A DNA stretch of 64,000 nt from Schmidtea polychroa (Eukaryota). A program made the position numbers and the translations under genes. The notes beneath the pieces are model-generated. The model ran no database searches and had not been told where the DNA came from. It was given only the letters and a program-made list of their open reading frames with translations. The stretch's first letter is position 1; each line of letters starts with the position of its first letter. The DNA is taken from assembly GCA_044892525.1 (NCBI GenBank), contig CM097885.1:109492001-109556000 (forward strand), written 5' to 3'. Shown in pieces: positions 1-62,639 of this stretch.

Positions 1-3000
1 GACTATTTTCAATTTCATCATGTCGAGATCTTCTAATTCGTTCCGCAATATCAGGAATGCTAGATTGAATTTGTACTGCTTCACATAAAATACCCATCAG
101 AGGCTCATTAACAGTTGCGGTTAGTTTTACGAGATCTTTTCCCTCCGAAACTTCTTTCAATAACATTTCTTCTAATTCAATCAGTTTCGATTCACTAATT
201 TCATTTTTCAAAGCATCTTTAGCGACTTTTATTCCATCAAGTAAATTCTCAACGTCTTTCCTGTTCAATAGTTTCTCTTTATCACCTTCTTCGTCATCAA
301 ATAAACATTTAATTGCCTCCAATATTTTGTTACTATCCTCATCGCTATTATCTAATCGCTTTTCACTCTTTATGCCTAATGCTTTTAATTGTTCACAAAT
401 AGATTTGTCAATTTTCACTTTAGATCCACTTTCTAAAGACCTGTTTAAATCGTTTATAATTTCTTCCACAAATCTTCTTTCTTTTTCTCCAGTCTTTGAT
501 TTCGGAATCAATGATTTCATAATTTCCAAACTTTCAACTAGTTCTTTGCCTTTCAAGTTGTTCAATTCACCTTTCTCCAGAGCATCGCATAATAATTTCT
601 GACCACTTTCAAGTCCTACTTTTCGTTCCATAGTTACTTCATCAATAATTTCGTCAACAATGTCTGCATTTCTAATTACTGTCGAATCTGGTACAATGGA
701 TTCTGAGATATCTTTGCACAATTTCCTTAATCTTTCAGCCTCTTCTTTATTCAATTCCAATTCCTTCGATTTGCAATCAATCACTTCTTGTAGTTTAGGA
801 AGAACTGATTCAAATAAAGTTTTATTTGCTTTCCATTCGTTGAATCTTTCTGAGTCTGGCGTTTCATTGATTTTACTTTCAACTTTATCCATAGCCTTTG
901 ACAATTTCGATAAATCTTGTCCTTTCAATTTTATTTGATCATTCTTTGAATTTTCCACTAATTCTTTCAAGATTGTTTCAATTGGTCGTCGACTATTTTC
1001 AATTTCATCATGTCGAGATCTTCTAATTCGTTCCGCAATATCAGGAATGCTAGATTGAATTTGTACTGCTTCACATAAAATACCCATCAGAGGCTCATTA
1101 ACAGTTGCGGTTAGTTTTACGAGATCTTTTCCCTCCGAAACTTCTTTCAATAACATTTCTTCTAATTCAATCAGTTTCGATTCACTAATTTCATTTTTCA
1201 AAGCATCTTTAGCGACTTTTATTCCATCAAGTAAATTCTCAACGTCTTTCCTGTTCAATAGTTTCTCTTTATCACCTTCTTCGTCATCAAATAAACATTT
1301 AATTGCCTCCAATATTTTGTTACTATCCTCATCGCTATTATCTAATCGCTTTTCACTCTTTATGCCTAATGCTTTTAATTGTTCACAAATAGATTTGTCA
1401 ATTTTCACTTTAGATCCACTTTCTAAAGACCTGTTTAAATCGTTTATAATTTCTTCCACAAATCTTCTTTCTTTTTCTCCAGTCTTTGATTTCGGAATCA
1501 ATGATTTCATAATTTCCAAACTTTCAACTAGTTCTTTGCCTTTCAAGTTGTTCAATTCACCTTTCTCCAGAGCATCGCATAATAATTTCTGACCACTTTC
1601 AAGTCCTACTTTTCGTTCCATAGTTACTTCATCAATAATTTCGTCAACAATGTCTGCATTTCTAATTACTGTCGAATCTGGTACAATGGATTCTGAGATA
1701 TCTTTGCACAATTTCCTTAATCTTTCAGCCTCTTCTTTATTCAATTCCAATTCCTTCGATTTGCAATCAATCACTTCTTGTAGTTTAGGAAGAACTGATT
1801 CAAATAAAGTTTTATTTGCTTTCCATTCGTTGGATCTTTCTGAGTCTGGCGTTTCATTGATTTTACTTTCAACTTTATCCATAGCCTTTGACAATTTCGA
1901 TAAATCTTGTCCTTTCAATTTTATTTGATCATTCTTTGAATTTTCCACTAATTCTTTCAAGATTGTTTCAATTGGTCGTCGACTATTTTCAATTTCATCA
2001 TGTCGAGATCTTCTAATTCGTTCCGCAATATCAGGAATGCTAGATTGAATTTGTACTGCTTCACATAAAATACCCATCAGAGGCTCATTAACAGTTGCGG
2101 TTAGTTTTACGAGATCTTTTCCCTCCGAAACTTCTTTCAATAACATTTCTTCTAATTCAATCAGTTTCGATTCACTAATTTCATTTTTCAAAGCATCTTT
2201 AGCGACTTTTATTCCATCAAGTAAATTCTCAACGTCTTTCCTGTTCAATAGTTTCTCTTTATCACCTTCTTCGTCATCAAATAAACATTTAATTGCCTCC
2301 AATATTTTGTTACTATCCTCATCGCTATTATCTAATCGCTTTTCACTCTTTATGCCTAATGCTTTTAATTGTTCACAAATAGATTTGTCAATTTTCACTT
2401 TAGATCCACTTTCTAAAGACCTGTTTAAATCGTTTATAATTTCTTCCACAAATCTTCTTTCTTTTTCTCCAGTCTTTGATTTCGGAATCAATGATTTCAT
2501 AATTTCCAAACTTTCAACTAGTTCTTTGCCTTTCAAGTTGTTCAATTCACCTTTCTCCAGAGCATCGCATAATAATTTCTGACCACTTTCAAGTCCTACT
2601 TTTCGTTCCATAGTTACTTCATCAATAATTTCGTCAACAATGTCTGCATTTCTAATTACTGTCGAATCTGGTACAATGGATTCTGAGATATCTTTGCACA
2701 ATTTCCTTAATCTTTCAGCCTCTTCTTTATTCAATTCCAATTCCTTCGATTTGCAATCAATCACTTCTTGTAGTTTAGGAAGAACTGATTCCAATAAAGT
2801 TTTATTTGCTTTCCATTCGTTGGATCTTTCTGAGTCTGGCGTTTCATTGATTTTACTTTCAACTTTATCCATAGCCTTTGACAATTTCGATAAATCTTGT
2901 CCTTTCAATTTTATTTGATCATTCTTTGAATTTTCCACTAATTCTTTCAAGATTGTTTCAATTGGTCGTCGACTATTTTCAATTTCATCATGTCGAGATC

Positions 3001-6000
3001 TTCTAATTCGTTCCGCAATATCAGGAATGCTAGATTGAATTTGTACTGCTTCACATAAAATACCCATCAGAGGCTCATTAACAGTTGCGGTTAGTTTTAC
3101 GAGATCTTTTCCCTCCGAAACTTCTTTCAATAACATTTCTTCTAATTCAATCAGTTTCGATTCACTAATTTCATTTTTCAAAGCATCTTTAGCGACTTTT
3201 ATTCCATCAAGTAAATTCTCAACGTCTTTCCTGTTCAATAGTTTCTCTTTATCACCTTCTTCGTCATCAAATAAACATTTAATTGCCTCCAATATTTTGT
3301 TACTATCCTCATCGCTATTATCTAATCGCTTTTCACTCTTTATGCCTAATGCTTTTAATTGTTCACAAATAGATTTGTCAATTTTCACTTTAGATCCACT
3401 TTCTAAAGACCTGTTTAAATCGTTTATAATTTCTTCCACAAATCTTCTTTCTTTTTCTCCAGTCTTTGATTTCGGAATCAATGATTTCATAATTTCCAAA
3501 CTTTCAACTAGTTCTTTGCCTTTCAAGTTGTTCAATTCACCTTTCTCCAGAGCATCGCATAATAATTTCTGACCACTTTCAAGTCCTACTTTTCGTTCCA
3601 TAGTTACTTCATCAATAATTTCGTCAACAATGTCTGCATTTCTAATTACTGTCGAATCTGGTACAATGGATTCTGAGATATCTTTGCACAATTTCCTTAA
3701 TCTTTCAGCCTCTTCTTTATTCAATTCCAATTCCTTCGATTTGCAATCAATCACTTCTTGTAGTTTAGGAAGAACTGATTCAAATAAAGTTTTATTTGCT
3801 TTCCATTCGTTGAATCTTTCTGAGTCTGGCGTTTCATTGATTTTACTTTCAACTTTATCCATAGCCTTTGACAATTTCGATAAATCTTGTCCTTTCAATT
3901 TTATTTGATCATTCTTTGAATTTTCCACTAATTCTTTCAAGATTGTTTCAATTGGTCGTCGACTATTTTCAATTTCATCATGTCGAGATCTTCTAATTCG
4001 TTCCGCAATATCAGGAATGCTAGATTGAATTTGTACTGCTTCACATAAAATACCCATCAGAGGTTCATTAACAGTTGCGGTTAGTTTTACGAGATCTTTT
4101 CCCTCCGAAACTTCTTTCAATAACATTTCTTCTAATTCAATCAGTTTCGATTCACTAATTTCATTTTTCAAAGCATCTTTAGCGACTTTTATTCCATCAA
4201 GTAAATTCTCAACGTCTTTCCTGTTCAATAGTTTCTCTTTATCACCTTCTTCGTCATCAAATAAACATTTAATTGCCTCCAATATTTTGTTACTATCCTC
4301 ATCGCTATTATCTAATCGCTTTTCACTCTTTATGCCTAATGCTTTTAATTGTTCACAAATAGATTTGTCAATTTTCACTTTAGATCCACTTTCTAAAGAC
4401 CTGTTTAAATCGTTTATAATTTCTTCCACAAATCTTCTTTCTTTTTCTCCAGTCTTTGATTTCGGAATCAATGATTTCATAATTTCCAAACTTTCAACTA
4501 GTTCTTTGCCTTTCAAGTTGTTCAATTCACCTTTCTCCAGAGCATCGCATAATAATTTCTGACCACTTTCAAGTCCTACTTTTCGTTCCATAGTTACTTC
4601 ATCAATAATTTCGTCAACAATGTCTGCATTTCTAATTACTGTCGAATCTGGTACAATGGATTCTGAGATATCTTTGCACAATTTCCTTAATCTTTCAGCC
4701 TCTTCTTTATTCAATTCCAATTCCTTCGATTTGCAATCAATCACTTCTTGTAGTTTAGGAAGAACTGATTCAAATAAAGTTTTATTTGCTTTCCATTCGT
4801 TGAATCTTTCTGAGTCTGGCGTTTCATTGATTTTACTTTCAACTTTATCCATAGCCTTTGACAATTTCGATAAATCTTGTCCTTTCAATTTTATTTGATC
4901 ATTCTTTGAATTTTCCACTAATTCTTTCAAGATTGTTTCAATTGGTCGTCGACTATTTTCAATTTCATCATGTCGAGATCTTCTAATTCGTTCCGCAATA
5001 TCAGGAATGCTAGATTGAATTTGTACTGCTTCACATAAAATACCCATCAGAGGTTCATTAACAGTTGCGGTTAGTTTTACGAGATCTTTTCCCTCCGAAA
5101 CTTCTTTCAATAACATTTCTTCTAATTCAATCAGTTTCGATTCACTAATTTCATTTTTCAAAGCATCTTTAGCGACTTTTATTCCATCAAGTAAATTCTC
5201 AACGTCTTTCCTGTTCAATAGTTTCTCTTTATCACCTTCTTCGTCATCAAATAAACATTTAATTGCCTCCAATATTTTGTTACTATCCTCATCGCTATTA
5301 TCTAATCGCTTTTCACTCTTTATGCCTAATGCTTTTAATTGTTCACAAATAGATTTGTCAATTTTCACTTTAGATCCACTTTCTAAAGACCTGTTTAAAT
5401 CGTTTATAATTTCTTCCACAAATCTTCTTTCTTTTTCTCCAGTCTTTGATTTCGGAATCAATGATTTCATAATTTCCAAACTTTCAACTAGTTCTTTGCC
5501 TTTCAAGTTGTTCAATTCACCTTTCTCCAGAGTATCGCATAATAATTTCTGACCACTTTCAAGTCCTACTTTTCGTTCCATAGTTACTTCATCAATAATT
5601 TCGTCAACAATGTCTGCATTTCTAATTACTGTCGAATCTGGTACAATGGATTCTGAGATATCTTTGCACAATTTCCTTAATCTTTCAGCCTCTTCTTTAT
5701 TCAATTCCAATTCCTTCGATTTGCAATCAACCACTTCTTGTAGTTTAGGAAGAACTGATTCCAATAAAGTTTTATTTGCTTTCCATTCGTTGGATCTTTC
5801 TGAGTCTGGCGTTTCATTGATTTTACTTTCAACTTTATCCATAGCCTTTGACAATTTCGATAAATCTTGTCCTTTCAATTTTATTTGATCATTCTTTGAA
5901 TTTTCCACTAATTCTTTCAAGATTGTTTCAATTGGTCGTCGACTATTTTCAATTTCATCATGTCGAGATCTTCTAATTCGTTCCGCAATATCAGGAATGC

Positions 6001-9000
6001 TAGATTGAATTTGTACTGCTTCACATAAAATACCCATCAGAGGCTCATTAACAGTTGCGGTTAGTTTTACGAGATCTTTTCCCTCCGAAACTTCTTTCAA
6101 TAACATTTCTTCTAATTCAATCAGTTTCGATTCACTAATTTCATTTTTCAAAGCATCTTTAGCGACTTTTATTCCATCAAGTAAATTCTCAACGTCTTTC
6201 CTGTTCAATAGTTTCTCTTTATCACCTTCTTCGTCATCAAATAAACATTTAATTGCCTCCAATATTTTGTTACTATCCTCATCGCTATTATCTAATCGCT
6301 TTTCACTCTTTATGCCTAATGCTTTTAATTGTTCACAAATAGATTTGTCAATTTTCACTTTAGATCCACTTTCTAAAGACCTGTTTAAATCGTTTATAAT
6401 TTCTTCCACAAATCTTCTTTCTTTTTCTCCAGTCTTTGATTTCGGAATCAATGATTTCATAATTTCCAAACTTTCAACTAGTTCTTTGCCTTTCAAGTTG
6501 TTCAATTCACCTTTCTCCAGAGTATCGCATAATAATTTCTGACCACTTTCAAGTCCTACTTTTCGTTCCATAGTTACTTCATCAATAATTTCGTCAACAA
6601 TGTCTGCATTTCTAATTACTGTCGAATCTGGTACAATGGATTCTGAGATATCTTTGCACAATTTCCTTAATCTTTCAGCCTCTTCTTTATTCAATTCCAA
6701 TTCCTTCGATTTGCAATCAACCACTTCTTGTAGTTTAGGAAGAACTGATTCCAATAAAGTTTTATTTGCTTTCCATTCGTTGGATCTTTCTGAGTCTGGC
6801 GTTTCATTGATTTTACTTTCAACTTTATCCATAGCCTTTGACAATTTCGATAAATCTTGTCCTTTCAATTTTATTTGATCATTCTTTGAATTTTCCACTA
6901 ATTCTTTCAAGATTGTTTCAATTGGTCGTCGACTATTTTCAATTTCATCATGTCGAGATCTTCTAATTCGTTCCGCAATATCAGGAATGCTAGATTGAAT
7001 TTGTACTGCTTCACATAAAATACCCATCAGAGGCTCATTAACAGTTGCGGTTAGTTTTACGAGATCTTTTCCCTCCGAAACTTCTTTCAATAACATTTCT
7101 TCTAATTCAATCAGTTTCGATTCACTAATTTCATTTTTCAAAGCATCTTTAGCGACTTTTATTCCATCAAGTAAATTCTCAACGTCTTTCCTGTTCAATA
7201 GTTTCTCTTTATCACCTTCTTCGTCATCAAATAAACATTTAATTGCCTCCAATATTTTGTTACTATCCTCATCGCTATTATCTAATCGCTTTTCACTCTT
7301 TATGCCTAATGCTTTTAATTGTTCACAAATAGATTTGTCAATTTTCACTTTAGATCCACTTTCTAAAGACCTGTTTAAATCGTTTATAATTTCTTCCACA
7401 AATCTTCTTTCTTTTTCTCCAGTCTTTGATTTCGGAATCAATGATTTCATAATTTCCAAACTTTCAACTAGTTCTTTGCCTTTCAAGTTGTTCAATTCAC
7501 CTTTCTCCAGAGTATCGCATAATAATTTCTGACCACTTTCAAGTCCTACTTTTCGTTCCATAGTTACTTCATCAATAATTTCGTCAACAATGTCTGCATT
7601 TCTAATTACTGTCGAATCTGGTACAATGGATTCTGAGATATCTTTGCACAATTTCCTTAATCTTTCAGCCTCTTCTTTATTCAATTCCAATTCCTTCGAT
7701 TTGCAATCAACCACTTCTTGTAGTTTAGGAAGAACTGATTCCAATAAAGTTTTATTTGCTTTCCATTCGTTGGATCTTTCTGAGTCTGGCGTTTCATTGA
7801 TTTTACTTTCAACTTTATCCATAGCCTTTGACAATTTCGATAAATCTTGTCCTTTCAATTTTATTTGATCATTCTTTGAATTTTCCACTAATTCTTTCAA
7901 GATTGTTTCAATTGGTCGTCGACTATTTTCAATTTCATCATGTCGAGATCTTCTAATTCGTTCCGCAATATCAGGAATGCTAGATTGAATTTGTACTGCT
8001 TCACATAAAATACCCATCAGAGGCTCATTAACAGTTGCGGTTAGTTTTACGAGATCTTTTCCCTCCGAAACTTCTTTCAATAACATTTCTTCTAATTCAA
8101 TCAGTTTCGATTCACTAATTTCATTTTTCAAAGCATCTTTAGCGACTTTTATTCCATCAAGTAAATTCTCAACGTCTTTCCTGTTCAATAGTTTCTCTTT
8201 ATCACCTTCTTCGTCATCAAATAAACATTTAATTGCCTCCAATATTTTGTTACTATCCTCATCGCTATTATCTAATCGCTTTTCACTCTTTATGCCTAAT
8301 GCTTTTAATTGTTCACAAATAGATTTGTCAATTTTCACTTTAGATCCACTTTCTAAAGACCTGTTTAAATCGTTTATAATTTCTTCCACAAATCTTCTTT
8401 CTTTTTCTCCAGTCTTTGATTTCGGAATCAATGATTTCATAATTTCCAAACTTTCAACTAGTTCTTTGCCTTTCAAGTTGTTCAATTCACCTTTCTCCAG
8501 AGTATCGCATAATAATTTCTGACCACTTTCAAGTCCTACTTTTCGTTCCATAGTTACTTCATCAATAATTTCGTCAACAATGTCTGCATTTCTAATTACT
8601 GTCGAATCTGGTACAATGGATTCTGAGATATCTTTGCACAATTTCCTTAATCTTTCAGCCTCTTCTTTATTCAATTCCAATTCCTTCGATTTGCAATCAA
8701 CCACTTCTTGTAGTTTAGGAAGAACTGATTCCAATAAAGTTTTATTTGCTTTCCATTCGTTGGATCTTTCTGAGTCTGGCGTTTCATTGATTTTACTTTC
8801 AACTTTATCCATAGCCTTTGACAATTTCGATAAATCTTGTCCTTTCAATTTTATTTGATCATTCTTTGAATTTTCCACTAATTCTTTCAAGATTGTTTCA
8901 ATTGGTCGTCGACTATTTTCAATTTCATCATGTCGAGATCTTCTAATTCGTTCCGCAATATCAGGAATGCTAGATTGAATTTGTACTGCTTCACATAAAA

Positions 9001-12000
9001 TACCCATCAGAGGCTCATTAACAGTTGCGGTTAGTTTTACGAGATCTTTTCCCTCCGAAACTTCTTTCAATAACATTTCTTCTAATTCAATCAGTTTCGA
9101 TTCACTAATTTCATTTTTCAAAGCATCTTTAGCGACTTTTATTCCATCAAGTAAATTCTCAACGTCTTTCCTGTTCAATAGTTTCTCTTTATCACCTTCT
9201 TCGTCATCAAATAAACATTTAATTGCCTCCAATATTTTGTTACTATCCTCATCGCTATTATCTAATCGCTTTTCACTCTTTATGCCTAATGCTTTTAATT
9301 GTTCACAAATAGATTTGTCAATTTTCACTTTAGATCCACTTTCTAAAGACCTGTTTAAATCGTTTATAATTTCTTCCACAAATCTTCTTTCTTTTTCTCC
9401 AGTCTTTGATTTCGGAATCAATGATTTCATAATTTCCAAACTTTCAACTAGTTCTTTGCCTTTCAAGTTGTTCAATTCACCTTTCTCCAGAGTATCGCAT
9501 AATAATTTCTGACCACTTTCAAGTCCTACTTTTCGTTCCATAGTTACTTCATCAATAATTTCGTCAACAATGTCTGCATTTCTAATTACTGTCGAATCTG
9601 GTACAATGGATTCTGAGATATCTTTGCACAATTTCCTTAATCTTTCAGCCTCTTCTTTATTCAATTCCAATTCCTTCGATTTGCAATCAACCACTTCTTG
9701 TAGTTTAGGAAGAACTGATTCCAATAAAGTTTTATTTGCTTTCCATTCGTTGGATCTTTCTGAGTCTGGCGTTTCATTGATTTTACTTTCAACTTTATCC
9801 ATAGCCTTTGACAATTTCGATAAATCTTGTCCTTTCAATTTTATTTGATCATTCTTTGAATTTTCCACTAATTCTTTCAAGATTGTTTCAATTGGTCGTC
9901 GACTATTTTCAATTTCATCATGTCGAGATCTTCTAATTCGTTCCGCAATATCAGGAATGCTAGATTGAATTTGTACTGCTTCACATAAAATACCCATCAG
10001 AGGCTCATTAACAGTTGCGGTTAGTTTTACGAGATCTTTTCCCTCCGAAACTTCTTTCAATAACATTTCTTCTAATTCAATCAGTTTCGATTCACTAATT
10101 TCATTTTTCAAAGCATCTTTAGCGACTTTTATTCCATCAAGTAAATTCTCAACGTCTTTCCTGTTCAATAGTTTCTCTTTCTCACCTTTTTCGTCATCAA
10201 ATAAACATTTAATTGCCTCCAATATTTTGTTACTATCCTCATCGCTATTATCTAATCGCTTTTCACTCTTTATGCCTAATGCTTTTAATTGTTCACAAAT
10301 AGATTTGTCAATTTTCACTTTAGATCCACTTTCTAAAGACCTGTTTAAATCGTTTATAATTTCTTCCACAAATCTTCTTTCTTTTTCTCCAGTCTTTGAT
10401 TTCGGAATCAATGATTTCATAATTTCCAAACTTTCAACTAGTTCTTTGCCTTTCAAGTTGTTCAATTCACCTTTCTCCAGAGCATCGCATAATAATTTCT
10501 GGCCACTTTCAAGTCCTACTTTTCGTTCCATAGTTACTTCATCAATAATTTCGTCAACAATGTCTGCATTTCTAATTACTGTCGAATCTGGTACAATGGA
10601 TTCTGAGATATCTTTGCACAATTTCCTTAATCTTTCAGCCTCTTCTTTATTCAATTCCAATTCCTTCGATTTGCAATCAACCACTTCTTGTAGTTTAGGA
10701 AGAACTGATTCCAATAAAGTTTTATTTGCTTTCCATTCGTTGGATCTTTCTGAGTCTGGCGTTTCATTGATTTTACTTTCAACTTTATCCATAGCCTTTG
10801 ACAATTTCGATAAATCTTGTCCTTTCAATTTTATTTGATCATTCTTTGAATTTTCCACTAATTCTTTCAAGATTGTTTCAATTGGTCGTCGACTATTTTC
10901 AATTTCATCATGTCGAGATCTTCTAATTCGTTCCGCAATATCAGGAATGCTAGATTGAATTTGTACTGCTTCACATAAAATACCCATCAGAGGCTCATTA
11001 ACAGTTGCGGTTAGTTTTACGAGATCTTTTCCCTCCGAAACTTCTTTCAATAACATTTCTTCTAATTCAATCAGTTTCGATTCACTAATTTCATTTTTCA
11101 AAGCATCTTTAGCGACTTTTATTCCATCAAGTAAATTCTCAACGTCTTTCCTGTTCAATAGTTTCTCTTTCTCACCTTTTTCGTCATCAAATAAACATTT
11201 AATTGCCTCCAATATTTTGTTACTATCCTCATCGCTATTATCTAATCGCTTTTCACTCTTTATGCCTAATGCTTTTAATTGTTCACAAATAGATTTGTCA
11301 ATTTTCACTTTAGATCCACTTTCTAAAGACCTGTTTAAATCGTTTATAATTTCTTCCACAAATCTTCTTTCTTTTTCTCCAGTCTTTGATTTCGGAATCA
11401 ATGATTTCATAATTTCCAAACTTTCAACTAGTTCTTTGCCTTTCAAGTTGTTCAATTCACCTTTCTCCAGAGCATCGCATAATAATTTCTGGCCACTTTC
11501 AAGTCCTACTTTTCGTTCCATAGTTACTTCATCAATAATTTCGTCAACAATGTCTGCATTTCTAATTACTGTCGAATCTGGTACAATGGATTCTGAGATA
11601 TCTTTGCACAATTTCCTTAATCTTTCAGCCTCTTCTTTATTCAATTCCAATTCCTTCGATTTGCAATCAATCACTTCTTGTAGTTTAGGAAGAACTGATT
11701 CCAATAAAGTTTTATTTGCTTTCCATTCGTTGAATCTTTCTGAGTCTGGCGTTTCATTGATTTTACTTTCAACTTTATCCATAGCCTTTGACAATTTCGA
11801 TAAATCTTGTCCTTTCAATTTTATTTGATCATTCTTTGAATTTTCCACTAATTCTTTCAAGATTGTTTCAATTGGTCGTCGACTATTTTCAATTTCATCA
11901 TGTCGAGATCTTCTAATTCGTTCCGCAATATCAGGAATGCTAGATTGAATTTGTACTGCTTCACATAAAATACCCATCAGAGGCTCATTAACAGTTGCGG

Positions 12001-24000: not shown

Positions 24001-27000
24001 GTAAATTCTCAACGTCTTTCCTGTTCAATAGTTTCTCTTTATCACCTTCTTCGTCATCAAATAAACATTTAATTGCCTCCAATATTTTGTTACTATCCTC
24101 ATCGCTATTATCTAATCGCTTTTCACTCTTTATGCCTAATGCTTTTAATTGTTCACAAATAGATTTGTCAATTTTCACTTTAGATCCACTTTCTAAAGAC
24201 CTGTTTAAATCGTTTATAATTTCTTCCACAAATCTTCTTTCTTTTTCTCCAGTCTTTGATTTCGGAATCAATGATTTCATAATTTCCAAACTTTCAACTA
24301 GTTCTTTGCCTTTCAAGTTGTTCAATTCACCTTTCTCCAGAGCATCGCATAATAATTTCTGACCACTTTCAAGTCCTACTTTTCGTTCCATAGTTACTTC
24401 ATCAATAATTTCGTCAACAATGTCTGCATTTCTAATTACTGTCGAATCTGGTACAATGGATTCTGAGATATCTTTGCACAATTTCCTTAATCTTTCAGCC
24501 TCTTCTTTATTCAATTCCAATTCCTTCGATTTGCAATCAATCACTTCTTGTAGTTTAGGAAGAACTGATTCAAATAAAGTTTTATTTGCTTTCCATTCGT
24601 TGGATCTTTCTGGGTCTGGCGTTTCATTGATTTTACTTTCAACTTTATCCATAGCCTTTGACAATTTCGATAAATCTTGTCCTTTCAATTTTATTTGATC
24701 ACTCTTTGAATTTTCCACTAATTCTTTCAAGATTGTTTCAATTGGTCGTCGACTATTTTCAATTTCATCATGTCGAGATCTTCTAATTCGTTCCGCAATA
24801 TCAGGAATGCTAGATTGAATTTGTACTGCTTCACATAAAATACCCATCAGAGGCTCATTAACAGTTGCGGTTAGTTTTACGAGATCTTTTCCCTCCGAAA
24901 CTTCTTTCAATAACATTTCTTCTAATTCAATCAGTTTCGATTCACTAATTTCATTTTTCAAAGCATCTTTAGCGACTTTTATTCCATCAAGTAAATTCTC
25001 AACGTCTTTCCTGTTCAATAGTTTCTCTTTATCACCTTCTTCGTCATCAAATAAACATTTAATTGCCTCCAATATTTTGTTACTATCCTCATCGCTATTA
25101 TCTAATCTCTTTTCACTCTTTATGCCTAATGCTTTTAATTGTTCACAAATAGATTTGTCAATTTTCACTTTAGATCCACTTTCTAAAGACCTGTTTAAAT
25201 CGTTTATAATTTCTTCCACAAATCTTCTTTCTTTTTCTCCAGTCTTTGATTTCGGAATCAATGATTTCATAATTTCCAAACTTTCAACTAGTTCTTTGCC
25301 TTTCAAGTTGTTCAATTCACCTTTCTCCAGAGCATCGCATAATAATTTCTGACCACTTTCAAGTCCTACTTTTCGTTCCATAGTTACTTCATCAATAATT
25401 TCGTCAACAATGTCTGCATTTCTAATTACTGTCGAATCTGGTACAATGGATTCTGAGATATCTTTGCACAATTTCCTTAATCTTTCAGCCTCTTCTTTAT
25501 TCAATTCCAATTCCTTCGATTTGCAATCAATCACTTCTTGTAGTTTAGGAAGAACTGATTCAAATAAAGTTTTATTTGCTTTCCATTCGTTGGATCTTTC
25601 TGGGTCTGGCGTTTCATTGATTTTACTTTCAACTTTATCCATAGCCTTTGACAATTTCGATAAATCTTGTCCTTTCAATTTTATTTGATCACTCTTTGAA
25701 TTTTCCACTAATTCTTTCAAGATTGTTTCAATTGGTCGTCGACTATTTTCAATTTCATCATGTCGAGATCTTCTAATTCGTTCCGCAATATCAGGAATGC
25801 TAGATTGAATTTGTACTGCTTCACATAAAATACCCATCAGAGGCTCATTAACAGTTGCGGTTAGTTTTACGAGATCTTTTCCCTCCGAAACTTCTTTCAA
25901 TAACATTTCTTCTAATTCAATCAGTTTCGATTCACTAATTTCATTTTTCAAAGCATCTTTAGCGACTTTTATTCCATCAAGTAAATTCTCAACGTCTTTC
26001 CTGTTCAATAGTTTCTCTTTATCACCTTCTTCGTCATCAAATAAACATTTAATTGCCTCCAATATTTTCTTACTATCCTCATCGCTATTATCTAATCGCT
26101 TTTCACTCTTTATGCCTAATGCTTTTAATTGTTCACAAATAGATTTGTCAATTTTCACTTTAGATCCACTTTCTAAAGACCTGTTTAAATCGTTTATAAT
26201 TTCTTCCACAAATCTTCTTTCTTTTTCTCCAGTCTTTGATTTCGGAATCAATGATTTCATAATTTCCAAACTTTCAACTAGTTCTTTGCCTTTCAAGTTG
26301 TTCAATTCACCTTTCTCCAGAGCATCGCATAATAATTTCTGACCACTTTCAAGTCCTACTTTTCGTTCCATAGTTACTTCATCAATAATTTCGTCAACAA
26401 TGTCTGCATTTCTAATTACTGTCGAATCTGGTACAATGGATTCTGAGATATCTTTGCACAATTTCCTTAATCTTTCAGCCTCTTCTTTATTCAATTCCAA
26501 TTCCTTCGATTTGCATCCAACCACTTCTTGTAGTTTAGGAAGAACTGATTCCAATAAAGTTTTATTTGCTTTCCATTCGTTGGATCTTTCTGAGTCTGGC
26601 GTTTCATTGATTTTACTTTCAACTTTATCCATAGCCTTTGACAATTTCGATAAATCTTGTCCTTTCAATTTTATTTGATCATTCTTTGAATTTTCCACTA
26701 ATTCTTTCAAGATTGTTTCAATTGGTCGTCGACTATTTTCAATTTCATCATGTCGAGATCTTCTAATTCGTTCCGCAATATCAGGAATGCTAGATTGAAT
26801 TTGTACTGCTTCACATAAAATACCCATCAGAGGCTCATTAACAGTTGCGGTTAGTTTTACGAGATCTTTTCCCTCCGAAACTTCTTTCAATAACATTTCT
26901 TCTAATTCAATCAGTTTCGATTCACTAATTTCATTTTTCAAAGCATCTTTAGCGACTTTTATTCCATCAAGTAAATTCTCAACGTCTTTCCTGTTCAATA

Positions 27001-30000
27001 GTTTCTCTTTATCACCTTCTTCGTCATCAAATAAACATTTAATTGCCTCCAATATTTTGTTACTATCCTCATCGCTATTATCTAATCGCTTTTCACTCTT
27101 TATGCCTAATGCTTTTAATTGTTCACAAATAGATTTGTCAATTTTCACTTTAGATCCACTTTCTAAAGACCTGTTTAAATCGTTTATAATTTCTTCCACA
27201 AATCTTCTTTCTTTTTCTCCAGTCTTTGATTTCGGAATCAATGATTTCATAATTTCCAAACTTTCAACTAGTTCTTTGCCTTTCAAGTTGTTCAATTCAC
27301 CTTTCTCCAGAGCATCGCATAATAATTTCTGACCACTTTCAAGTCCTACTTTTCGTTCCATAGTTACTTCATCAATAATTTCGTCAACAATGTCTGCATT
27401 TCTAATTACTGTCGAATCTGGTACAATGGATTCTGAGATATCTTTGCACAATTTCCTTAATCTTTCAGCCTCTTCTTTATTCAATTCCAATTCCTTCGAT
27501 TTGCATCCAACCACTTCTTGTAGTTTAGGAAGAACTGATTCCAATAAAGTTTTATTTGCTTTCCATTCGTTGGATCTTTCTGAGTCTGGCGTTTCATTGA
27601 TTTTACTTTCAACTTTATCCATAGCCTTTGACAATTTCGATAAATCTTGTCCTTTCAATTTTATTTGATCATTCTTTGAATTTTCCACTAATTCTTTCAA
27701 GATTGTTTCAATTGGTCGTCGACTATTTTCAATTTCATCATGTCGAGATCTTCTAATTCGTTCCGCAATATCAGGAATGCTAGATTGAATTTGTACTGCT
27801 TCACATAAAATACCCATCAGAGGCTCATTAACAGTTGCGGTTAGTTTTACGAGATCTTTTCCCTCCGAAACTTCTTTCAATAACATTTCTTCTAATTCAA
27901 TTAGTTTCGATTCACTAATTTCATTTTTCAAAGCATCTTTAGCGACTTTTATTCCATCAAGTAAATTCTCAACGTCTTTCCTGTTCAATAGTTTCTCTTT
28001 CTCACCTTTTTCGTCATCAAATAAACATTTAATTGCCTCCAATATTTTGTTACTATCCTCATCGCTATTATCTAATCGCTTTTCACTCTTTATGCCTAAT
28101 GCTTTTAATTGTTCACAAATAGATTTGTCAATTTTCACTTTAGATCCACTTTCTAAAGACCTGTTTAAATCGTTTATAATTTCTTCCACAAATCTTCTTT
28201 CTTTTTCTCCAGTCTTTGATTTCGGAATCAATGATTTCATAATTTCCAAACTTTCAACTAGTTCTTTGCCTTTCAAGTTATTCAATTCACCTTTCTCCAG
28301 AGCATCGCATAATAATTTCTGACCACTTTCAAGTCCTACTTTTCGTTCCATAGTTACTTCATCAATAATTTCGTCAACAATGTCTGCATTTCTAATTACT
28401 GTCGAATCTGGTACAATGGATTCTGAGATATCTTTGCACAATTTCCATAATCTTTCAGCCTCTTCTTTATTCAATTCCAATTCCTTCGATTTGCAATCAA
28501 CCACTTCTTGTAGTTTAGAAAGAACTGATTCCAATAAAGTTTTATTTGCTTTCCATTCGTTGGATCTTTCTGAGTCTGGCGTTTCATTGATTTTACTTTC
28601 AACTTTATCCATAGCCTTTGACAATTTCGATAAATCTTGTCCTTTCAATTTTATTTGATCATTCTTTGAATTTTCCATTAATTCTTTTAAGATTGTTTCA
28701 ATTGGTCGTCGACTATTTTCAATTTCATCATGTCGAGATCTTCTAATTCGTTCCGCAATATCAGGAATGCTAGATTGAATTTGTACTGCTTCACATAAAA
28801 TACCCATCAGAGGCTCATTAACAGTTGCGGTTAGTTTTACGAGATCTTTTCCCTCCGAAACTTCTTTCAATAACATTTCTTCTAATTCAATCAGTTTCGA
28901 TTCACTAATTTCATTTTTCAAAGCATCTTTAGCGACTTTTATTCCATCAAGTAAATTGTCAACGTCTTCCTTGTTCAATAGTTTCTCTTTCTCCCCTTCT
29001 TCGTCATCAAATAAACATTTAATTGCCTCCAATATTTTGTTACTATCATCATCGCTATTATCTAATCGCTTTTCACTCTTTATGCCTAATGCTTTTAATT
29101 GTTCACAAATAGATTTGTCAATTTTCACTTTAGATCCACTTTCTAAAGACCTGTTTAAATCGTTTATAATTTCTTCCACAAATCTTCTTTCTTTTTCTCC
29201 AGTCTTTGATTTCGGAATCAATGATTTCATAATTTCCAAACTTTCAACTAGTTCTTTGCCTTTCAAGTTGTTCAATTCACCTTTCTCCAGAGCATCGCAT
29301 AATAATTTCTGACCACTTTCAAGTCCTACTTTTCGTTCCATAGTTACTTCATCAATAATTTCGTCAACAATGTCTGCATTTCTAATTACTGTCGAATCTG
29401 GTACAATGGATTCTGAGATATCTTTGCACAATTTCCTTAATCTTTCAGCCTCTTCTTTATTCAATTCCAATTCCTTCGATTTGCAATCAACCACTTCTTG
29501 TAGTTTAGGAAGAACTGATTCCAATAAAGTTTTATTTGCTTTCCATTCGTTGGATCTTTCTGAGTCTGGCGTTTCATTGATTTTACTTTCAACTTTATCC
29601 ATAGCCTTTGACAATTTCGATAAATCTTGTCCTTTCAATTTTATTTGATCATTCTTTGAATTTTCCACTAATTCTTTCAAGATTGTTTCAATTGGTCGTC
29701 GACTATTTTCAATTTCATCATGTCGAGATCTTCTAATTCGTTCCGCAATATCAGGAATGCTAGATTGAATTTGTACTGCTTCACATAAAATACCCATCAG
29801 AGGCTCATTAACAGTTGCGGTTAGTTTTACGAGATCTTTTCCCTCCGAAACTTCTTTCAATAACATTTCTTCTAATTCAATCAGTTTCGATTCACTAATT
29901 TCATTTTTCAAAGCATCTTTAGCGACTTTTATTCCATCAAGTAAATTCTCAACGTCTTTCCTGTTCAATAGTTTCTCTTTCTCACCTTCTTCGTCATCAA

Positions 30001-33000
30001 ATAAACATTTAATTGCCTCCAATATTTTGTTACTATCCTCATCGCTATTATCTAATCGCTTTTCACTCTTTATGCCTAATGCTTTTAATTGTTCACAAAT
30101 AGATTTGTCAATTTTCACTTTAGATCCACTTTCTAAAGACCTGTTTAAATCGTTTATAATTTCTTCCACAAATCTTCTTTCTTTTTCTCCAGTCTTTGAT
30201 TTCGGAATCAATGATTTCATAATTTCCAAACTTTCAACTAGTTCTTTGCCTTTCAAGTTATTCAATTCACCTTTCTCCAGAGCATCGCATAATAATTTCT
30301 GACCACTTTCAAGTCCTACTTTTCGTTCCATAGTTACTTCATCAATAATTTCGTCAACAATGTCTGCATTTCTAATTACTGTCGAATCTGGTACAATGGA
30401 TTCTGAGATATCTTTGCACAATTTCCATAATCTTTCAGCCTCTTCTTTATTCAATTCCAATTCCTTCGATTTGCAATCAACCACTTCTTGTAGTTTAGAA
30501 AGAACTGATTCCAATAAAGTTTTATTTGCTTTCCATTCGTTGGATCTTTCTGAGTCTGGCGTTTCATTGATTTTACTTTCAACTTTATCCATAGCCTTTG
30601 ACAATTTCGATAAATCTTGTCCTTTCAATTTTATTTGATCATTCTTTGAATTTTCCATTAATTCTTTTAAGATTGTTTCAATTGGTCGTCGACTATTTTC
30701 AATTTCATCATGTCGAGATCTTCTAATTCGTTCCGCAATATCAGGAATGCTAGATTGAATTTGTACTGCTTCACATAAAATACCCATCAGAGGCTCATTA
30801 ACAGTTGCGGTTAGTTTTACGAGATCTTTTCCCTCCGAAACTTCTTTCAATAACATTTCTTCTAATTCAATCAGTTTCGATTCACTAATTTCATTTTTCA
30901 AAGCATCTTTAGCGACTTTTATTCCATCAAGTAAATTGTCAACGTCTTCCCTGTTCAATAGTTTCTCTTTCTCCCCTTCTTCGTCATCAAATAAACATTT
31001 AATTGCCTCCAATATTTTGTTACTATCATCATCGCTATTATCTAATCGCTTTTCACTCTTTATGCCTAATGCTTTTAATTGTTCACAAATAGATTTGTCA
31101 ATTTTCACTTTAGATCCACTTTCTAAAGACCTGTTTAAATCGTTTATAATTTCTTCCACAAATCTTCTTTCTTTTTCTCCAGTCTTTGATTTCGGAATCA
31201 ATGATTTCATAATTTCCAAACTTTCAACTAGTTCTTTGCCTTTCAAGTTGTTCAATTCACCTTTCTCCAGAGCATCGCATAATAATTTCTGACCACTTTC
31301 AAGTCCTACTTTTCGTTCCATAGTTACTTCATCAATAATTTCGTCAACAATGTCTGCATTTCTAATTACTGTCGAATCTGGTACAATGGATTCTGAGATA
31401 TCTTTGCACAATTTCCTTAATCTTTCAGCCTCTTCTTTATTCAATTCCAATTCCTTCGATTTGCAATCAACCACTTCTTGTAGTTTAGGAAGAACTGATT
31501 CCAATAAAGTTTTATTTGCTTTCCATTCGTTGGATCTTTCTGAGTCTGGCGTTTCATTGATTTTACTTTCAACTTTATCCATAGCCTTTGACAATTTCGA
31601 TAAATCTTGTCCTTTCAATTTTATTTGATCATTCTTTGAATTTTCCACTAATTCTTTCAAGATTGTTTCAATTGGTCGTCGACTATTTTCAATTTCATCA
31701 TGTCGAGATCTTCTAATTCGTTCCGCAATATCAGGAATGCTAGATTGAATTTGTACTGCTTCACATAAAATACCCATCAGAGGCTCATTAACAGTTGCGG
31801 TTAGTTTTACGAGATCTTTTCCCTCCGAAACTTCTTTCAATAACATTTCTTCTAATTCAATCAGTTTCGATTCACTAATTTCATTTTTCAAAGCATCTTT
31901 AGCGACTTTTATTCCATCAAGTAAATTCTCAACGTCTTTCCTGTTCAATAGTTTCTCTTTCTCACCTTCTTCGTCATCAAATAAACATTTAATTGCCTCC
32001 AATATTTTGTTACTATCCTCATCGCTATTATCTAATCGCTTTTCACTCTTTATGCCTAATGCTTTTAATTGTTCACAAATAGATTTGTCAATTTTCACTT
32101 TAGATCCACTTTCTAAAGACCTGTTTAAATCGTTTATAATTTCTTCCACAAATCTTCTTTCTTTTTCTCCAGTCTTTGATTTCGGAATCAATGATTTCAT
32201 AATTTCCAAACTTTCAACTAGTTCTTTGCCTTTCAAGTTGTTCAATTCACCTTTCTCCAGAGCATCGCATAATAATTTCTGGCCACTTTCAAGTCCTACT
32301 TTTCGTTCCATAGTTACTTCATCAATAATTTCGTCAACAATGTCTGCATTTCTAATTACTGTCGAATCTGGTACAATGGATTCTGAGATATCTTTGCACA
32401 ATTTCCTTAATCTTTCAGCCTCTTCTTTATTCAATTCCAATTCCTTCGATTTGCAATCAACCACTTCTTGTAGTTTAGGAAGAACTGATTCCAATAAAGT
32501 TTTATTTGCTTTCCATTCGTTGGATCTTTCTGAGTCTGGCGTTTCATTGATTTTACTTTCAACTTTATCCATAGCCTTTGACAATTTCGATAAATCTTGT
32601 CCTTTCAATTTTATTTGATCACTCTTTGAATTTTCCACTAATTCTTTCAAGATTGTTTCAATTGGTCGTCGACTATTTTCAATTTCATCATGTCGAGATC
32701 TTCTAATTCGTTCCGCAATATCAGGAATGCTAGATTGAATTTGTACTGCTTCACATAAAATACCCATCAGAGGCTCATTAACAGTTGCGGTTAGTTTTAC
32801 GAGATCTTTTCCCTCCGAAACTTCTTTCAATAACATTTCTTCTAATTCAATCAGTTTCGATTCACTAATTTCATTTTTCAAAGCATCTTTAGCGACTTTT
32901 ATTCCATCAAGTAAATTGTCAACGTCTTCCCTGTTCAATAGTTTCTCTTTCTCACCTTCTTCGTCATCAAATAAACATTTAATTGCCTCCAATATTTTGT

Positions 33001-33336
33001 TACTATCATCATCGCTATTATCTAATCGCTTTTCACTCTTTATGCCTAATGCTTTTAATTGTTCACAAATAGATTTGTCAATTTTCACTTTAGATCCACT
33101 TTCTAAAGACCTGTTTAAATCGTTTATAATTTCTTCCACAAATCTTCTTTCTTTTTCTCCAGTCTTTGATTTCGGAATCAATGATTTCATAATTTCCAAA
33201 CTTTCAACTAGTTCTTTGCCTTTCAAGTTGTTCAATTCACCTTTCTCCAGAGCATCGCATAATAATTTCTGACCACTTTCAAGTCCTACTTTTCGTTCCA
33301 TAGTTACTTCATCAATAATTTCGTCAACAATATCTG
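1..33336 (-). repeat. Coding tandem array, 990-bp unit, ~33.7 copies visible (continues past the left edge)
   Basis: Exact 990-bp periodicity: the plus-strand shadow ORFs recur at 327, 1317, 2307 ... 32007. Only substitutions were seen between units. Homology ends near 33336 (tcgtcaacaa-tatctg vs tcgtcaacaa-tgtctg). Confidence 0.99.
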
Positions 33337-35460
33337 TAAAATCGGGTTTCTTTGTTTCATAGTCCATAAAATTCACTTGAGATTCTCTTGTTTTATTTTC
33401 TTCTTTTTCTTTTTCTTCATTTATTATTTCATTTTTTTTTGTGTTTTCAAAATTTTGTTTTTCTTCCTGTTCATATTTATTTAATTTGTTATCGTCGTCT
33501 TTTATTTTGCTTTCTTTATATACTAATACTTCTGTTTTCCTGCTATCATTATCTGGTTTTTCTTGAGTTCCTTTTAGGTGATACTCCATTATATCTGTCA
33601 TTTCCAAGCATATTATGTTTTCTGTATCCGAACCTACACTTGTTTCGTCTGCCTCTTCAATTGTGTCAAGAACTTCATTTATTATTTGAGTTTCCTTTTC
33701 ATTACATTTTATGTTTTTATACTCTCCTTTATTTTCAATTTTTTCTATTACTTCTATTAGTTGAAAAATGGTATTTTTATTTTTATGAATTCCTATGCTC
33801 TTGCTAGCAATGGATTTCAGTGATTTTACTAATTTTTCGTCGCAATCAATCCCATTAGTTTGATTTACAATGTTTCTTACAGCTTTAGCATTTTCGAAAT
33901 TAAAACTTTCTAAATTTTCATTTTCTTTAATATGTTTTATTATTGCAGTATTAATTTTTAGGATTCTCAACGCCTCTAATAATTTATTAGCTTCTTCTTG
34001 TGACAATTTTAATAAAATATCATTAGTGGTTTGTTGCTTCGTTTTCATAGCCTTATTTAATATTTCATACGCTTCATTTATAATTTCAGTTTCTTCTTTT
34101 TGCAAGAATCCCGCATTATTTTCTTGTACTTCTTTTCCGTAAATATTTATAAGATTTTCTAATTCTTTTACTAAAGGCCGGTCTAAAATAACTTCATTTT
34201 CAGTATTTTCAAAAAGTACATCATTTAATTTTTTCGAAACGTTTTCAATTGTCTTTATTTTTTGTTTTGCATTGAATATTTCTGAACCGCAAACAATTAA
34301 TCTAGTTTCTTCAGAATACTCTAAAGGATCTTCATCGTCGTCACTTTCATTGGGTGTATCATTATAATATTCCATTATTTTATAAACAATATTTTCTTGA
34401 TTTTCTTCATCCACAGAGTTAACTAAATCAAAAATACTCTCTACCCTTTTCCCGCGATATCCGTCTTTTTTTATTCGATCCAAAAATAACTTTGTATATT
34501 CAGTTTGATTTGTTATTTGCTTCTTTTGTTGTAATATGTTAGTCAAGGAGCTTTTAACTCGTAGATAACTTGCATTTGAAATTTCACACGAATTTCTAGT
34601 TAAGTAACCGTAAACTAACGATGATTTTTTTAATTTTTTTGAAGGATTTTGCTTAACACTTTTTTCTGGGTCATATCTGTGTTCTATTGTGAATGTGAAT
34701 TCTTCATTTTCCGGTTTATTGTAATTTGTTATTCGAACATTCAGCTGTTCACTCATGTCAAAATCGCTTTCGAATTCTGAAGATTCGATTGATTCCGTTC
34801 GAGAATCAAATGTATCTGAAATGTCTGATTCACAATAAATGTCGAACTCTCGATTAATATTAGCCCTCGAATGACTTATTAATGAATTTAGTTTTATAAA
34901 TGATTCTTTCTTTATCACTTCTGGCATTTCGTTATTCACCGGTTTCATTAATTTACCCAATCTCGATATTTGAGATTTAGCAGTAGATTGTTTTGTTAAT
35001 AAATAATTAATTAAATTTGTATTATTGTCCTGAGATTCGCTGACATTTGTATCAAAGAACTCTTGATTTTCTGGATTATCTTTATCTTTATTTTCTGAGA
35101 AATTTGTAAGCAATTGATCTGATTTTTTAAATTTTTTATAATCATCACTGATAAAATTAGATAAATTTTTCTTAATTGACTTCTTTGGTCTCTCTTTGTT
35201 GATATTAATGCATTCATCTTTTGGTAAAGATATTTCTGGATTAGATTCAAAATAAAAAGTGGGATAAAAATTCTCTTGGACGTGTTCACAAGACGATGAC
35301 AAAGTATTGCTATCGCTGGTTACTATCTCAATTTGTTGGCACTGGTCCGTGTCGATAACAATATGATCCGTAGTAATGATTTTCTTTTTCGTAGGAAATT
35401 CATTACTTGATTTATCTGATTTCTTTTTCTGCCTAATCCGTTTTTTTCTGTGCTTTTTAC
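2..35460 (-). CDS. Giant single coding exon (>35.4 kb, >=11,820 codons, 3'-incomplete): ~700-aa unique acidic/basic region followed by >=33.6 tandem 330-aa E/K/L-rich helical repeats; probably the central exon of the STARD9-like kinesin
   Basis: I translated the unique region (35460-33337) and one full repeat unit codon by codon in the minus frame (plus-strand triplets starting at position = 2 mod 3) and found no stop. The variant sites I checked in other units also create no stop. The frame closes just upstream at TAA 35473-35471, after a polypyrimidine/AG acceptor (TTTTTTTAG|GT AAA AAG CAC, AG = 35462-35461, phase 1). It begins (G)KKHRKKRIRQKKKSDKSSNEFP...; the repeat starts DIVDEIIDEVTMERKVGLESGQKLLCDALEKGELNNLKGKELVESLEIMK... 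It is absent from the ORF track because no stop lies inside the window. Confidence 0.93.
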
Positions 35461-38445: not shown

Positions 38446-38473
38446 CACGTGTACATGACGAAGTCAAGCCCAT
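38446..38473 (-). CDS. Candidate alternative first coding micro-exon MGLTSSCTR(G), N-myristoylation-type start, splicing in phase 1 to the giant exon
   Basis: ACT-ATG-G start context with an in-frame TAA 21 nt upstream. ATG GGC TTG ACT TCG TCA TGT ACA CGT G|GTAAA. The phase matches the 35460 acceptor (G+GT = Gly). Confidence 0.5.
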
Positions 38474-38663
38474 AGTAAAATAAATTCCATTTATTTAGAT
38501 AATGAATCAATATTTCTCAACTAACGTAAATTGAAATTATTAGTTGCTGATTGGATATTTAAATGAAAATTTATTGTCTATTTTTAGAACACAACATAAG
38601 AAAATTAATAATTAATAAATTAATGACTTTATTATTATTGAATCAAAATTTATTTGTTATTAC

Positions 38664-38746
38664 CTTGGTTATCGATACGGTGTTTGATGCTGTCAGATGA
38701 ACCAGAATGTCCATTGTAGAAATAAGTTGTTGGTAGCCTTGAAACT
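38664..38746 (-). CDS. 83-nt internal exon (K)VSRLPTTYFYNGHSGSSDSIKHRIDNQ(G) linking upstream exons to the giant exon
   Basis: Acceptor TGTTTTGTTTTAACCTTTATCTAACAATAG| with a CTAAC branch-like motif, donor CAAG|GTAATA. Open reading, phase 2 to 1, matching the phase-2 donor at 47776 and the phase-1 acceptor at 35460. Confidence 0.7.
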
Positions 38747-39748: not shown

Positions 39749-39760
39749 CTCCCCTTCTTT
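39749..39760 (-). other. Polypurine tract AAAGAAGGGGAG
   Basis: Purine run directly abutting the 3' LTR and overlapping the integrase stop codon. Confidence 0.85.
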
Positions 39761-41057: not shown

Positions 41058-41149
41058 ATTGGTTCCGGTAATCCTTTCGCTTTGTTGAAAACTTGTCTTG
41101 CAATATGTTTCAAAGAAACCGTAGGCCTATTGTGTCTTCATTAACCAAT

Positions 41150-42013: not shown

Positions 42014-42090
42014 AAAACCGAAATCGATACCATTAACAACTCTCTAAATCCATTCACATTCAAAAATCTAATTAACTTCTAAATCTCTTG

Positions 42091-42237: not shown

Positions 42238-42247
42238 AATTGACCTT

Positions 42248-61922: not shown

Positions 61923-62639
61923 CTAAATGAAAGTTACATTAATTCAATATTATACACGAAAAATATATAAAAAGTAATTCTCAAGGCAAGGAACTTTTGA
62001 TCAACCAACTAATTCATAACAATTTTCCTACTCAAAAATATTCTTTTCTGAATTTAGCATATTTATATAATAAACAAAACCAATTCAAATTATTTTCTTA
62101 GTGTAAATTTTATGTAGAAAATTCTAATGAGTTATCAGTAACATCAGTTATCCTTTTCTTTTCTGATTTGTTTTCAATTATTTTCAATTTTCATTTATCT
62201 TCATTCAGTGTTCGATTATAGATCAATGTTGTCTGTTTAACACAAATTTAGGCACTATCTTTTCCAAGTATTATTCCTAAATAGTAATTGAAAATAAATT
62301 AAAGTGATATCTATAACCAAATATAATTTATTATTAATGGAAAGGCAAATTGCAATTTTCTAAAGAATTCACTTGTAAACGTCTAATTGTAAATGTCAGT
62401 AATCTAGTAAATTACAATTTCGTGATCATCGGTTGTTGACAAAGTCGTTTCTTGACTTTTTTTGGCCAAACCCTCTTTAGGGATATTTTGTTTAAATTAA
62501 CTAAATTTTATGCCAAGTGAAATAAATATCAACGTTAAAATCTTTTTAATAAAGTGAAATTATTGCCTAGAAACATTAATGTCAATTTTGATTAACTACT
62601 AATTTCAATTTGACAATAAACTCAAGTGCTGGGTTACGG

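Follow-up and report, generated by a model that had tools for sequence, protein, structure and literature searches.

Titin, AHNAK, the spectrin and plakin proteins and the Balbiani-ring proteins of Chironomus are megadalton proteins composed of many repeated modules, and in AHNAK and the Balbiani-ring proteins the repeats reside in one giant exon. Filaggrin (FLG) is built from repeats of ~324 amino acids (aa) each, the copy number of which is polymorphic. Among kinesins, human STARD9 spans ~4,700 aa, much of which is encoded by one large exon, and K39 of Leishmania, a far smaller protein, carries repeats of 39 aa. The FLG repeats, 12 in number, are arranged in tandem in the largest exon of the gene, exon 3 (PMC8659778). 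A large exon of repeats is found in every human mucin, and the proteins specified by MUC12 alleles range from 4,677 to 23,080 aa (PMC13345508). Giant repeat exons are thus already known from mucins and filaggrin, and size alone is not unprecedented. Here we describe a repeat exon of this kind in Schmidtea polychroa. It lies in a stretch of 64,000 nucleotides (nt), hereafter the window (GenBank assembly GCA_044892525.1, contig CM097885.1, positions 109,492,001–109,556,000), in which all positions are numbered from 1. Read on the minus strand from 35460 to 1, the sequence is, with a probability that we put at roughly 0.8, the first 35.5 kb of one transcribed coding exon. This exon comprises a unique part followed by a variable number of tandem repeats (VNTR) array, and most likely encodes the tail of a kinesin-3-type motor.

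An uninterrupted reading frame of 11,823 codons

Six-frame translation of the 64-kb window, with open ends allowed, revealed a minus-strand frame that runs for 35,470 nt (positions 1–35470), i.e., 11,823 codons, without a stop. The second- and third-longest stop-free stretches in the window measure 867 nt (the antisense of the array, one per unit) and 687 nt (an open reading frame, ORF, of a retroelement). The visible part of the giant coding exon (2..35460, minus strand) starts at 35460, immediately after an acceptor AG at 35462-35461. At this boundary the minus strand reads ...tttttttag followed by GTAAAAAGCAC..., and RNA contigs cover the region from 32600 to 35462. The 3′ end of the exon lies beyond position 1. 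The visible part alone encodes 1.34 MDa.

Two segments make up the exon. The unique 5′ part (33337..35460, minus strand; 2.1 kb, ~708 codons), identified by translation and by RNA contigs spanning 33302-35462, encodes in order a polybasic patch (GKKHRKKRIRQKKK), a stretch rich in Ser, Asp and Glu, and a helical-looking stretch. The remainder (1..33336, minus strand) is a head-to-tail array of a 990-nt (330-codon) unit, in which 33 full units are followed by 664 nt of a further unit ended by the window edge; the array itself extends beyond position 1. BLAST comparison of the unique 5′ part with the unit revealed neither similarity nor old, diverged units.

Routine tools pass over both the frame and the array. 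The ORF listing for positions 1–35500 contains no ORF of 250 aa or more, and the giant frame is missing from it because the ORF tool skips ORFs that run off the source. Tandem Repeats Finder (TRF) did not detect the array because the 990-nt unit exceeds its maximum period of 500. A preliminary description, made from the letters of the window, had reported an exon of more than 35.4 kb with more than 11,800 open codons, starting at 35460 and invisible to the ORF track, and the translation, the acceptor site and the ORF listing agree with it on each point.

Structure and growth of the array

An anchor motif occurs 34 times in the translation at a spacing of exactly 330 aa. The array comprises 33.7 units of exactly 990 nt, from 33336 down to 1, in exact register and with no insertions or deletions (indels). 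Pairwise identity among units ranges from 98.4 to 100%, with a mean of 99.34%. Relative to the unit consensus there are 139 differences; the distinct variants among them number 31 and fall in 30 columns, and not one is a stop. These counts match the ~34 units with dozens of substitutions and no indel or nonsense change of the preliminary description; in-frame stops and frameshifts, which would have spoken against its interpretation, were looked for by computation, and none was found in the 33 full units.

Variants are common to neighbouring units and to blocks of 1–6 units. For instance, units 25–28 are identical, as are units 11, 17 and 19, and units 12 and 18, while units 3 and 5, two units apart, have one haplotype in common. 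Such block-sharing marks an array that has grown as blocks of 1–6 units were duplicated or exchanged unequally. To judge from its variants, the array is young or homogenised, and does not give the impression of long preservation. In its organization it resembles a VNTR exon: the unit length is a multiple of three (990 nt, or 330 codons), the frame is kept in all copies, and one uninterrupted exon holds the array as far as the window extends, the 35,470 nt being free of stops and gaps and the RNA contigs over 32600–35462 and the unit–unit junction free of joints.

On the plus strand of 1–33336, one frame contains three stops per unit and stays open over 867 nt, equal to 289 of the 330 codons. 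This antisense open stretch probably results from the richness of the sense codons in Glu, Lys and Leu.

Transcription and splicing of the giant exon

Contigs from two RNA-labelled runs (X7 and X9) and two DNA runs (X5 and X1) were compared with positions 32600–38599. RNA contigs are colinear with the genome throughout 32600–35462, including the array, the unit–unit junctions and the unique part up to 35462. The unit has an RNA depth of ~1,500 and the unique part of the exon one of 7–70, and between 35600 and 37800, within the intron, the depth is 0. In the same intronic interval DNA depth is ~50–60, and the RNA signal is therefore not due to DNA carry-over. RNA coverage at 33.3–35.5 kb and in the array, suggested as a check in the preliminary description, thus indicates that both are transcribed. 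RNA depth at the unit–unit junction is high (X7 record 19), each of the four runs, RNA and DNA alike, yields contigs that span this junction, and no RNA joint is seen within the unit. Within the limits of short contigs, transcription of the array is colinear and without splicing. RNA runs of at least three studies contain 66–86% of the sampled words of the unit.

The splice that leads into the giant exon was located in X7 record 21. The match of this contig ends at 35462 and is followed by 100 other letters, the first 30 of which map uniquely to 38666-38695. Once two ambiguous letters are allowed for, the junction joins 38664 to 35460, in frame, with GT at 38663-38662 and AG at 35462-35461. 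The giant exon is accordingly spliced into an mRNA, and the RNA-defined intron occupies 35461..38663 (minus strand), in agreement with the zero RNA depth noted above. The upstream exon (38664..38745, minus strand) is 82 nt long and is open in the frame dictated by the junction (VSRLPTTYFYNGHSGSSDSIKHRIDNQ, followed by G across the junction). Its length fits the earlier remark that the other exons here are small. The 82-nt exon is internal rather than first, because it is preceded by an AG; moreover, the X7 contig carries ~18 further nt that come from another exon located upstream.

A proposed alternative start, MGLTSSC at 38473 (minus strand), falls inside the RNA-defined intron and has no support from X7 or X9 contigs, the only signal at 38400–38599 being a contact of 18 nt with an unrelated contig of 2.8 kb. 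The same intron holds a high-copy element at ~37800–38000, where DNA word depth reaches 1,570–2,150 versus ~50 in the flanks.

Several X9 contigs end in non-templated T runs, at 32609, 32631, 32960, 33165 and 33432. We do not regard these ends as real poly(A) sites, since each adjoins a genomic T run (an A run in the mRNA sense) and looks like the product of internal oligo-dT priming. Of the sampled words of the unit (taken from the unit at 32345-33334), 40–64% are present in RNA runs that bear the labels of two other organisms (B and C), and 74% in a metagenome. These samples are either from very close relatives or contain the source animal.

Coding signature and constraint

The consensus unit has no stop in the sense frame, whereas the other five frames contain 31, 48, 27, 3 and 16 stops. 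None of 20,000 shuffles of the unit yielded any open frame, and the analytic chance of one is ~2e-14. The G content varies with codon position (35.5% at position 1, 13.6% at position 2 and 16.7% at position 3). A satellite would keep no frame and carry no coding signature; here, one frame has 0 stops, and the other five have 3–48.

The array is in frame with the unique 5′ part, which is itself constrained. In the unique part, 18 single-nucleotide polymorphisms (SNPs) are listed from the DNA run X5, which derives from a strain ~1% diverged from the window. Half of them (9) are synonymous and half (9) non-synonymous, the expected split being 18% synonymous to 75% non-synonymous (ratio ~0.24, p = 0.004). 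These between-strain SNPs show purifying selection on the unique 5′ part. The five between-strain indels listed (2, 1, 1, 7 and 1 nt) are all intronic. Taken together, the data support the view that the sequence is one real coding exon.

The only exonic length difference between strains that we infer is one of 15 nt, which keeps the frame, inside the coding E/K-rich stretch at 33302 to ~33430. X7 record 18 places 468 nt on 453 nt of the window, and X5 record 13 contains 26 gap letters, only 11–12 of which come from the listed intronic indels.

The repeat unit as a protein

The 330-aa unit has a mass of 37.4 kDa and an isoelectric point (pI) of 5.0. It contains 74 Asp and Glu residues versus 59 Lys and Arg residues, and is rich in Glu, Lys, Leu, Ser and Ile. 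Its hydrophobic periodicity is 3.4–3.7 residues. A single-sequence AlphaFold2 (AF2) model of one unit is all-helical, with ~12 helices of 15–58 residues and short loops between them.

Searches for relatives of the unit were almost entirely negative. Pfam returned only sub-threshold noise for both the unit and the unique part, PDB sequences gave no match to the unit at E <= 10, the best score in the ESM Atlas (0.58) is noise, and a word-indexed search of 5.8 billion proteins found no match. HMMER, run on 1.84 billion representative proteins, returned one weak match, P0001 (E = 3e-4). This protein of 524 aa aligns to residues 28–159 of the unit over 132 aa without gaps, at 29–30% identity (pairwise E 3e-13). 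This match is a hint that the module predates the array. On the strength of the searches, the unit is a lineage-restricted orphan, and by the predicted structure it is an all-alpha-helical module.

P0001 is encoded at positions 427–2001 of L001, a 2-kb metagenome contig of the Joint Genome Institute (JGI) with a GC content of 37.5%, for which no organism or context is given; Pfam finds nothing in the protein. By eye, its flanks resemble a retroelement protease and integrase. One possibility is that P0001 represents a retroelement which, in another organism, took up part of a homologous gene.

Ungapped BLOSUM lag scores along the unit revealed no dominant internal period (best z ~2), and self-BLAST returned nothing. 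Sub-repeats of 55–60 aa, a candidate organization of the unit, thus have no support from either approach. As judged by Pfam, PDB, the Atlas and the internal period, the unit contains no recognisable spectrin or other helical-repeat domain.

Copy number and differences between strains

The number of units was estimated from read depth, by dividing the depth of the collapsed unit by that of the unique flank. In X1, a DNA run with 0 differences from the window over 3.6 kb, the ratio is ~96 (5204–5255 over 54.1). In X5 it is ~55 (2696–2850 over 49.7). Both ratios exceed the 33.7 units of the window, and the array is therefore not inflated by assembly; expansion by the assembler, named in the preliminary description as a possible source of the array, is not borne out. 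By this rough depth proxy the array is probably length-polymorphic between strains (~55 versus ~96 units). An array of ~96 units would equal ~95 kb and would encode ~31,700 aa, or ~3.6 MDa.

The longest annotated transcripts of two haplotypes of S. mediterranea measure 76,733 and 94,201 bp (PMC11410931). These lengths are compatible in size with the gene described here and with length polymorphism, although a tie to this locus could not be made.

Kinesin exons upstream of the giant exon

Kinesin motor and neck exons were identified at 56466..61933 on the minus strand by motif scan, Pfam (PF00225) and PDB matches. They are located 21–26 kb upstream of the giant exon and on the same strand. The exons encode both switch motifs of a kinesin motor, namely, switch I (SSRSH, near 61891) and switch II (LVDLAG, near 61757), as found by motif scan, which also placed IPYRNSKLT near 58624. 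The end of the motor (56763-56593) is followed by the neck coil DANVKLIRELREQI at 56576-56466, which reads ...IVNE followed by DANVKLIRELREQIKILQ; all of these elements are on the minus strand. Four exon pieces match positions 188–327 of the PF00225 profile in order, and one of them, the best at 42 bits, exceeds the cut-off of 29.3 bits. The first 187 profile positions, corresponding to the P-loop half of the motor, lie beyond position 64000. The best PDB matches of the motor are KIF13B, KIF14 and KIF1A, which are kinesin-3 proteins, and the neck coil DANVKLIRELREQIKILQ is presumably of kinesin-3 type. The giant exon most likely encodes the tail of this kinesin-3-type motor, as suggested by their common strand and order.

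The neck exon and the 82-nt exon are separated by an interval of ~17.7 kb, in which a retroelement, an assembly gap and an ORF on the plus strand are located. A run of minus-strand ORFs in this interval, at 39759-42649 (219, 206, 200 and 133 aa), resembles, by eye, retroelement integrase and gag-type sequences. Runs of N are present at 45955-46205 (251 nt) and 61134-61272 (139 nt), within the interval of kinesin exons and introns. At the gathering threshold, Rfam found no RNA family in the whole window, 59105-59463 included.

A model for the origin and function of the array

The array may lengthen and shorten by unequal crossing-over or by duplication of blocks of 1–6 units. Since 990 is divisible by three, every such exchange would leave the frame intact of itself. 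A megadalton open frame could thus arise fast and be retained with little selection on single copies. The product would be a kinesin-3-type microtubule motor or anchor, the tail of which is a megadalton, acidic, modular helical rod. Such a rod might be a long spacer or tether that links microtubules to the binding partner of the C-terminus, its length being set by the number of units.

In its most far-reaching form, the model joins a single exon of ~55–100 kb to the kinesin-3 motor in one polypeptide of ~20,000–33,000 aa. This would be the largest motor protein, of titin size, with a micrometre-scale helical tail serving as a tunable ruler or tether, the length of which is varied between strains or haplotypes by unequal crossing-over. 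We advance this version tentatively, and regard it as possible but doubtful.

Opposing evidence and alternative explanations

Several observations weigh against the interpretation of the locus as a coding VNTR exon that forms the tail of a kinesin-3-type motor, and some of them favour particular alternatives. The AF2 model has a pLDDT (predicted local distance difference test) of 50.4 and a pTM (predicted template modelling score) of 0.27, which means low confidence and restricts its use to secondary structure. The word-depth ratio of collapsed contigs is a rough proxy of copy number, in which identical units located elsewhere in the genome are also counted. RNA depth per copy is 2–4 times higher on the unit than on the unique part, an excess that could come from 3′ bias or from extra transcripts starting within the array. 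Translation of the giant exon is itself an inference. Further points, on the link to the motor and on selection in the array, are given with the alternatives on which they bear.

The alternative that survives best holds that the giant exon is coding but belongs to a gene of its own, starting at ~39–48 kb, with the kinesin-3 gene ending earlier, so that motor and rod are separate proteins. No RNA contig joins the motor to the 82-nt exon among contigs compared over 32600–38599 only, and the 82-nt exon is the only short exon tied to the giant one. The ~17.7-kb interval, with its retroelement, assembly gap and plus-strand ORF, leaves room for such a boundary. A regex scan downstream of the neck also found no FHA-like motif, the FHA domain being one that follows the motor in kinesin-3 proteins, although such a scan may miss a motif where exons are as tiny as here. 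In contrast, the 82-nt exon is not a first exon, being preceded by an AG and, in the RNA contig, by ~18 nt of upstream sequence. Motor and giant exon are encoded on one strand, no further minus-strand gene can be recognised in the interval, and the kinesin motor as seen here would be left without a tail of its own. We therefore consider two separate genes rather unlikely, and continue to favour the giant exon as the motor's tail.

A second alternative denies coding altogether. The array would be a transcribed satellite, lying in or after an exon and untranslated, whose frame is open only since the copies are too young to have decayed. The units are 99.3% identical and differ by 31 distinct variants, which are distributed in blocks like the higher-order repeats of satellites, and the unit belongs to no protein family, the weak metagenomic match being its only homologue. 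Within the array, the synonymous to non-synonymous ratio of the variants is 11:20 (ratio ~0.5, p = 0.05), a borderline excess of synonymous changes. Moreover, only ~31 independent changes are available and 6.5% of possible single changes lead to a stop, so that ~2 stops are expected and the probability of seeing none is 0.12. The absence of nonsense changes is thus weak evidence on its own, because so few independent variants exist. The preliminary description had argued from this absence that the frame is actively maintained and that the array is not a satellite. Its argument is weakened accordingly, but its conclusion is supported by other evidence, namely, the single open frame, the G content by codon position, the SNPs of the unique part and the intronic position of the indels. 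In a composition as rich in A+T as this one, the probability of a 330-codon founder with exactly one open frame is only ~2e-14, and the codon-position composition is typical of coding sequences. The array is in frame both with 708 unique codons under purifying selection and with a spliced upstream exon, its period is a multiple of three, and its 33 units contain no indel. Finally, a protein of another organism matches the unit over 132 aa without gaps at 29–30% identity, which suggests that the protein module is of older date. An untranslated satellite is consequently improbable.

It is highly improbable that the assembler expanded or tidied a shorter array, and that copy number or perfect register arose as an artefact in this way: blocks of identical units (e.g., units 25–28) are hard to assemble, and X1 may share its sample with the assembly and is then not fully independent, but the collapsed unit reaches ~96 times the depth of the flank in X1 and ~55 times in X5, a different strain, both above 33.7 units, the variant pattern is structured rather than noise-like, and unit–unit junction contigs are present in all four runs.

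Significance and comparison with known systems

If the giant exon is translated and joined to the motor, its product would be by far the largest kinesin and one of the largest animal proteins, and the exon would rank with the largest coding exons. Such a protein would have formed by very recent tandem amplification of a folded-looking helical module of 37 kDa, in contrast to the slow divergence of modules in titin and spectrin. It would also imply that a lineage-specific orphan domain can reach megadalton scale with its frame kept. Strains with ~55 and ~96 units would provide a natural experiment on the length of a motor tail and its function. Exons of this type escape ORF tracks, TRF (period >500) and short-read assembly, and are probably under-counted in annotated genomes. 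Within the searchable library, literature searches on giant kinesins, planarian STARD9, the largest exon and Schmidtea kinesin-3 returned no description of such a kinesin or of this gene.

Like titin, AHNAK, the spectrins, the plakins and the Balbiani-ring proteins, the predicted product would be a megadalton protein composed of many repeated modules. The unit, however, as judged by Pfam, PDB and the Atlas, shows no sequence similarity to immunoglobulin (Ig) and fibronectin type III (Fn3) domains or to spectrin, plakin and AHNAK repeats. Moreover, the modules of titin and spectrin are diverged, whereas the copies described here are nearly identical. FLG is closer in this respect, as it also carries long, near-identical, protein-sized units in one large exon (~324 aa versus 330 aa). 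Yet filaggrin has 10–12 units that are cut into monomers, while the present array has at least 34 and probably 55–100 units, in which no processing sites were identified. The two also differ in context, which is of the S100 fused type in FLG and a kinesin here.

Mucins such as MUC12 and MUC4 (PMC13345508) feature, like this locus, a single very large tandem-repeat exon in which the frame is kept; their alleles differ greatly in length, as those of this locus probably do. The preliminary description had held that the exon exceeds typical giant exons in size, which is true but has a precedent in the human MUC12 repeat-exon alleles of up to 23,080 aa (PMC13345508). Mucin repeats are short, rich in Pro, Thr and Ser, disordered, glycosylated and extracellular. 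In contrast, the unit described here is a 330-aa acidic and, as predicted, helical module that is 99% identical between copies, has no visible secretion signal and is apparently carried by a cytoskeletal motor.

STARD9/KIF16A and other kinesin-3 proteins (PMC4310736) have an N-terminal kinesin-3-type motor, matched here by the kinesin exons with their neck VNE/DANVKLIRELREQI, and a very long, poorly conserved tail. They differ from this locus in that no FHA motif was found here by the regex scan, the tail is a tandem array several times the length of the whole STARD9, and the connection between motor and tail is deduced from their arrangement. The region in which a START domain would be sought lies at the 3′ end of the gene, beyond the window. 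The Leishmania kinesin K39 (PMC8480608, PMC6355020) is likewise a kinesin with tandem repeats in its tail, although it belongs to an unrelated lineage. What is unusual in S. polychroa is therefore the combination of features, i.e., a 330-aa orphan unit predicted to be helical, copies that are ~99% identical, tens to perhaps a hundred of them in one exon, and an intracellular motor as their probable carrier.

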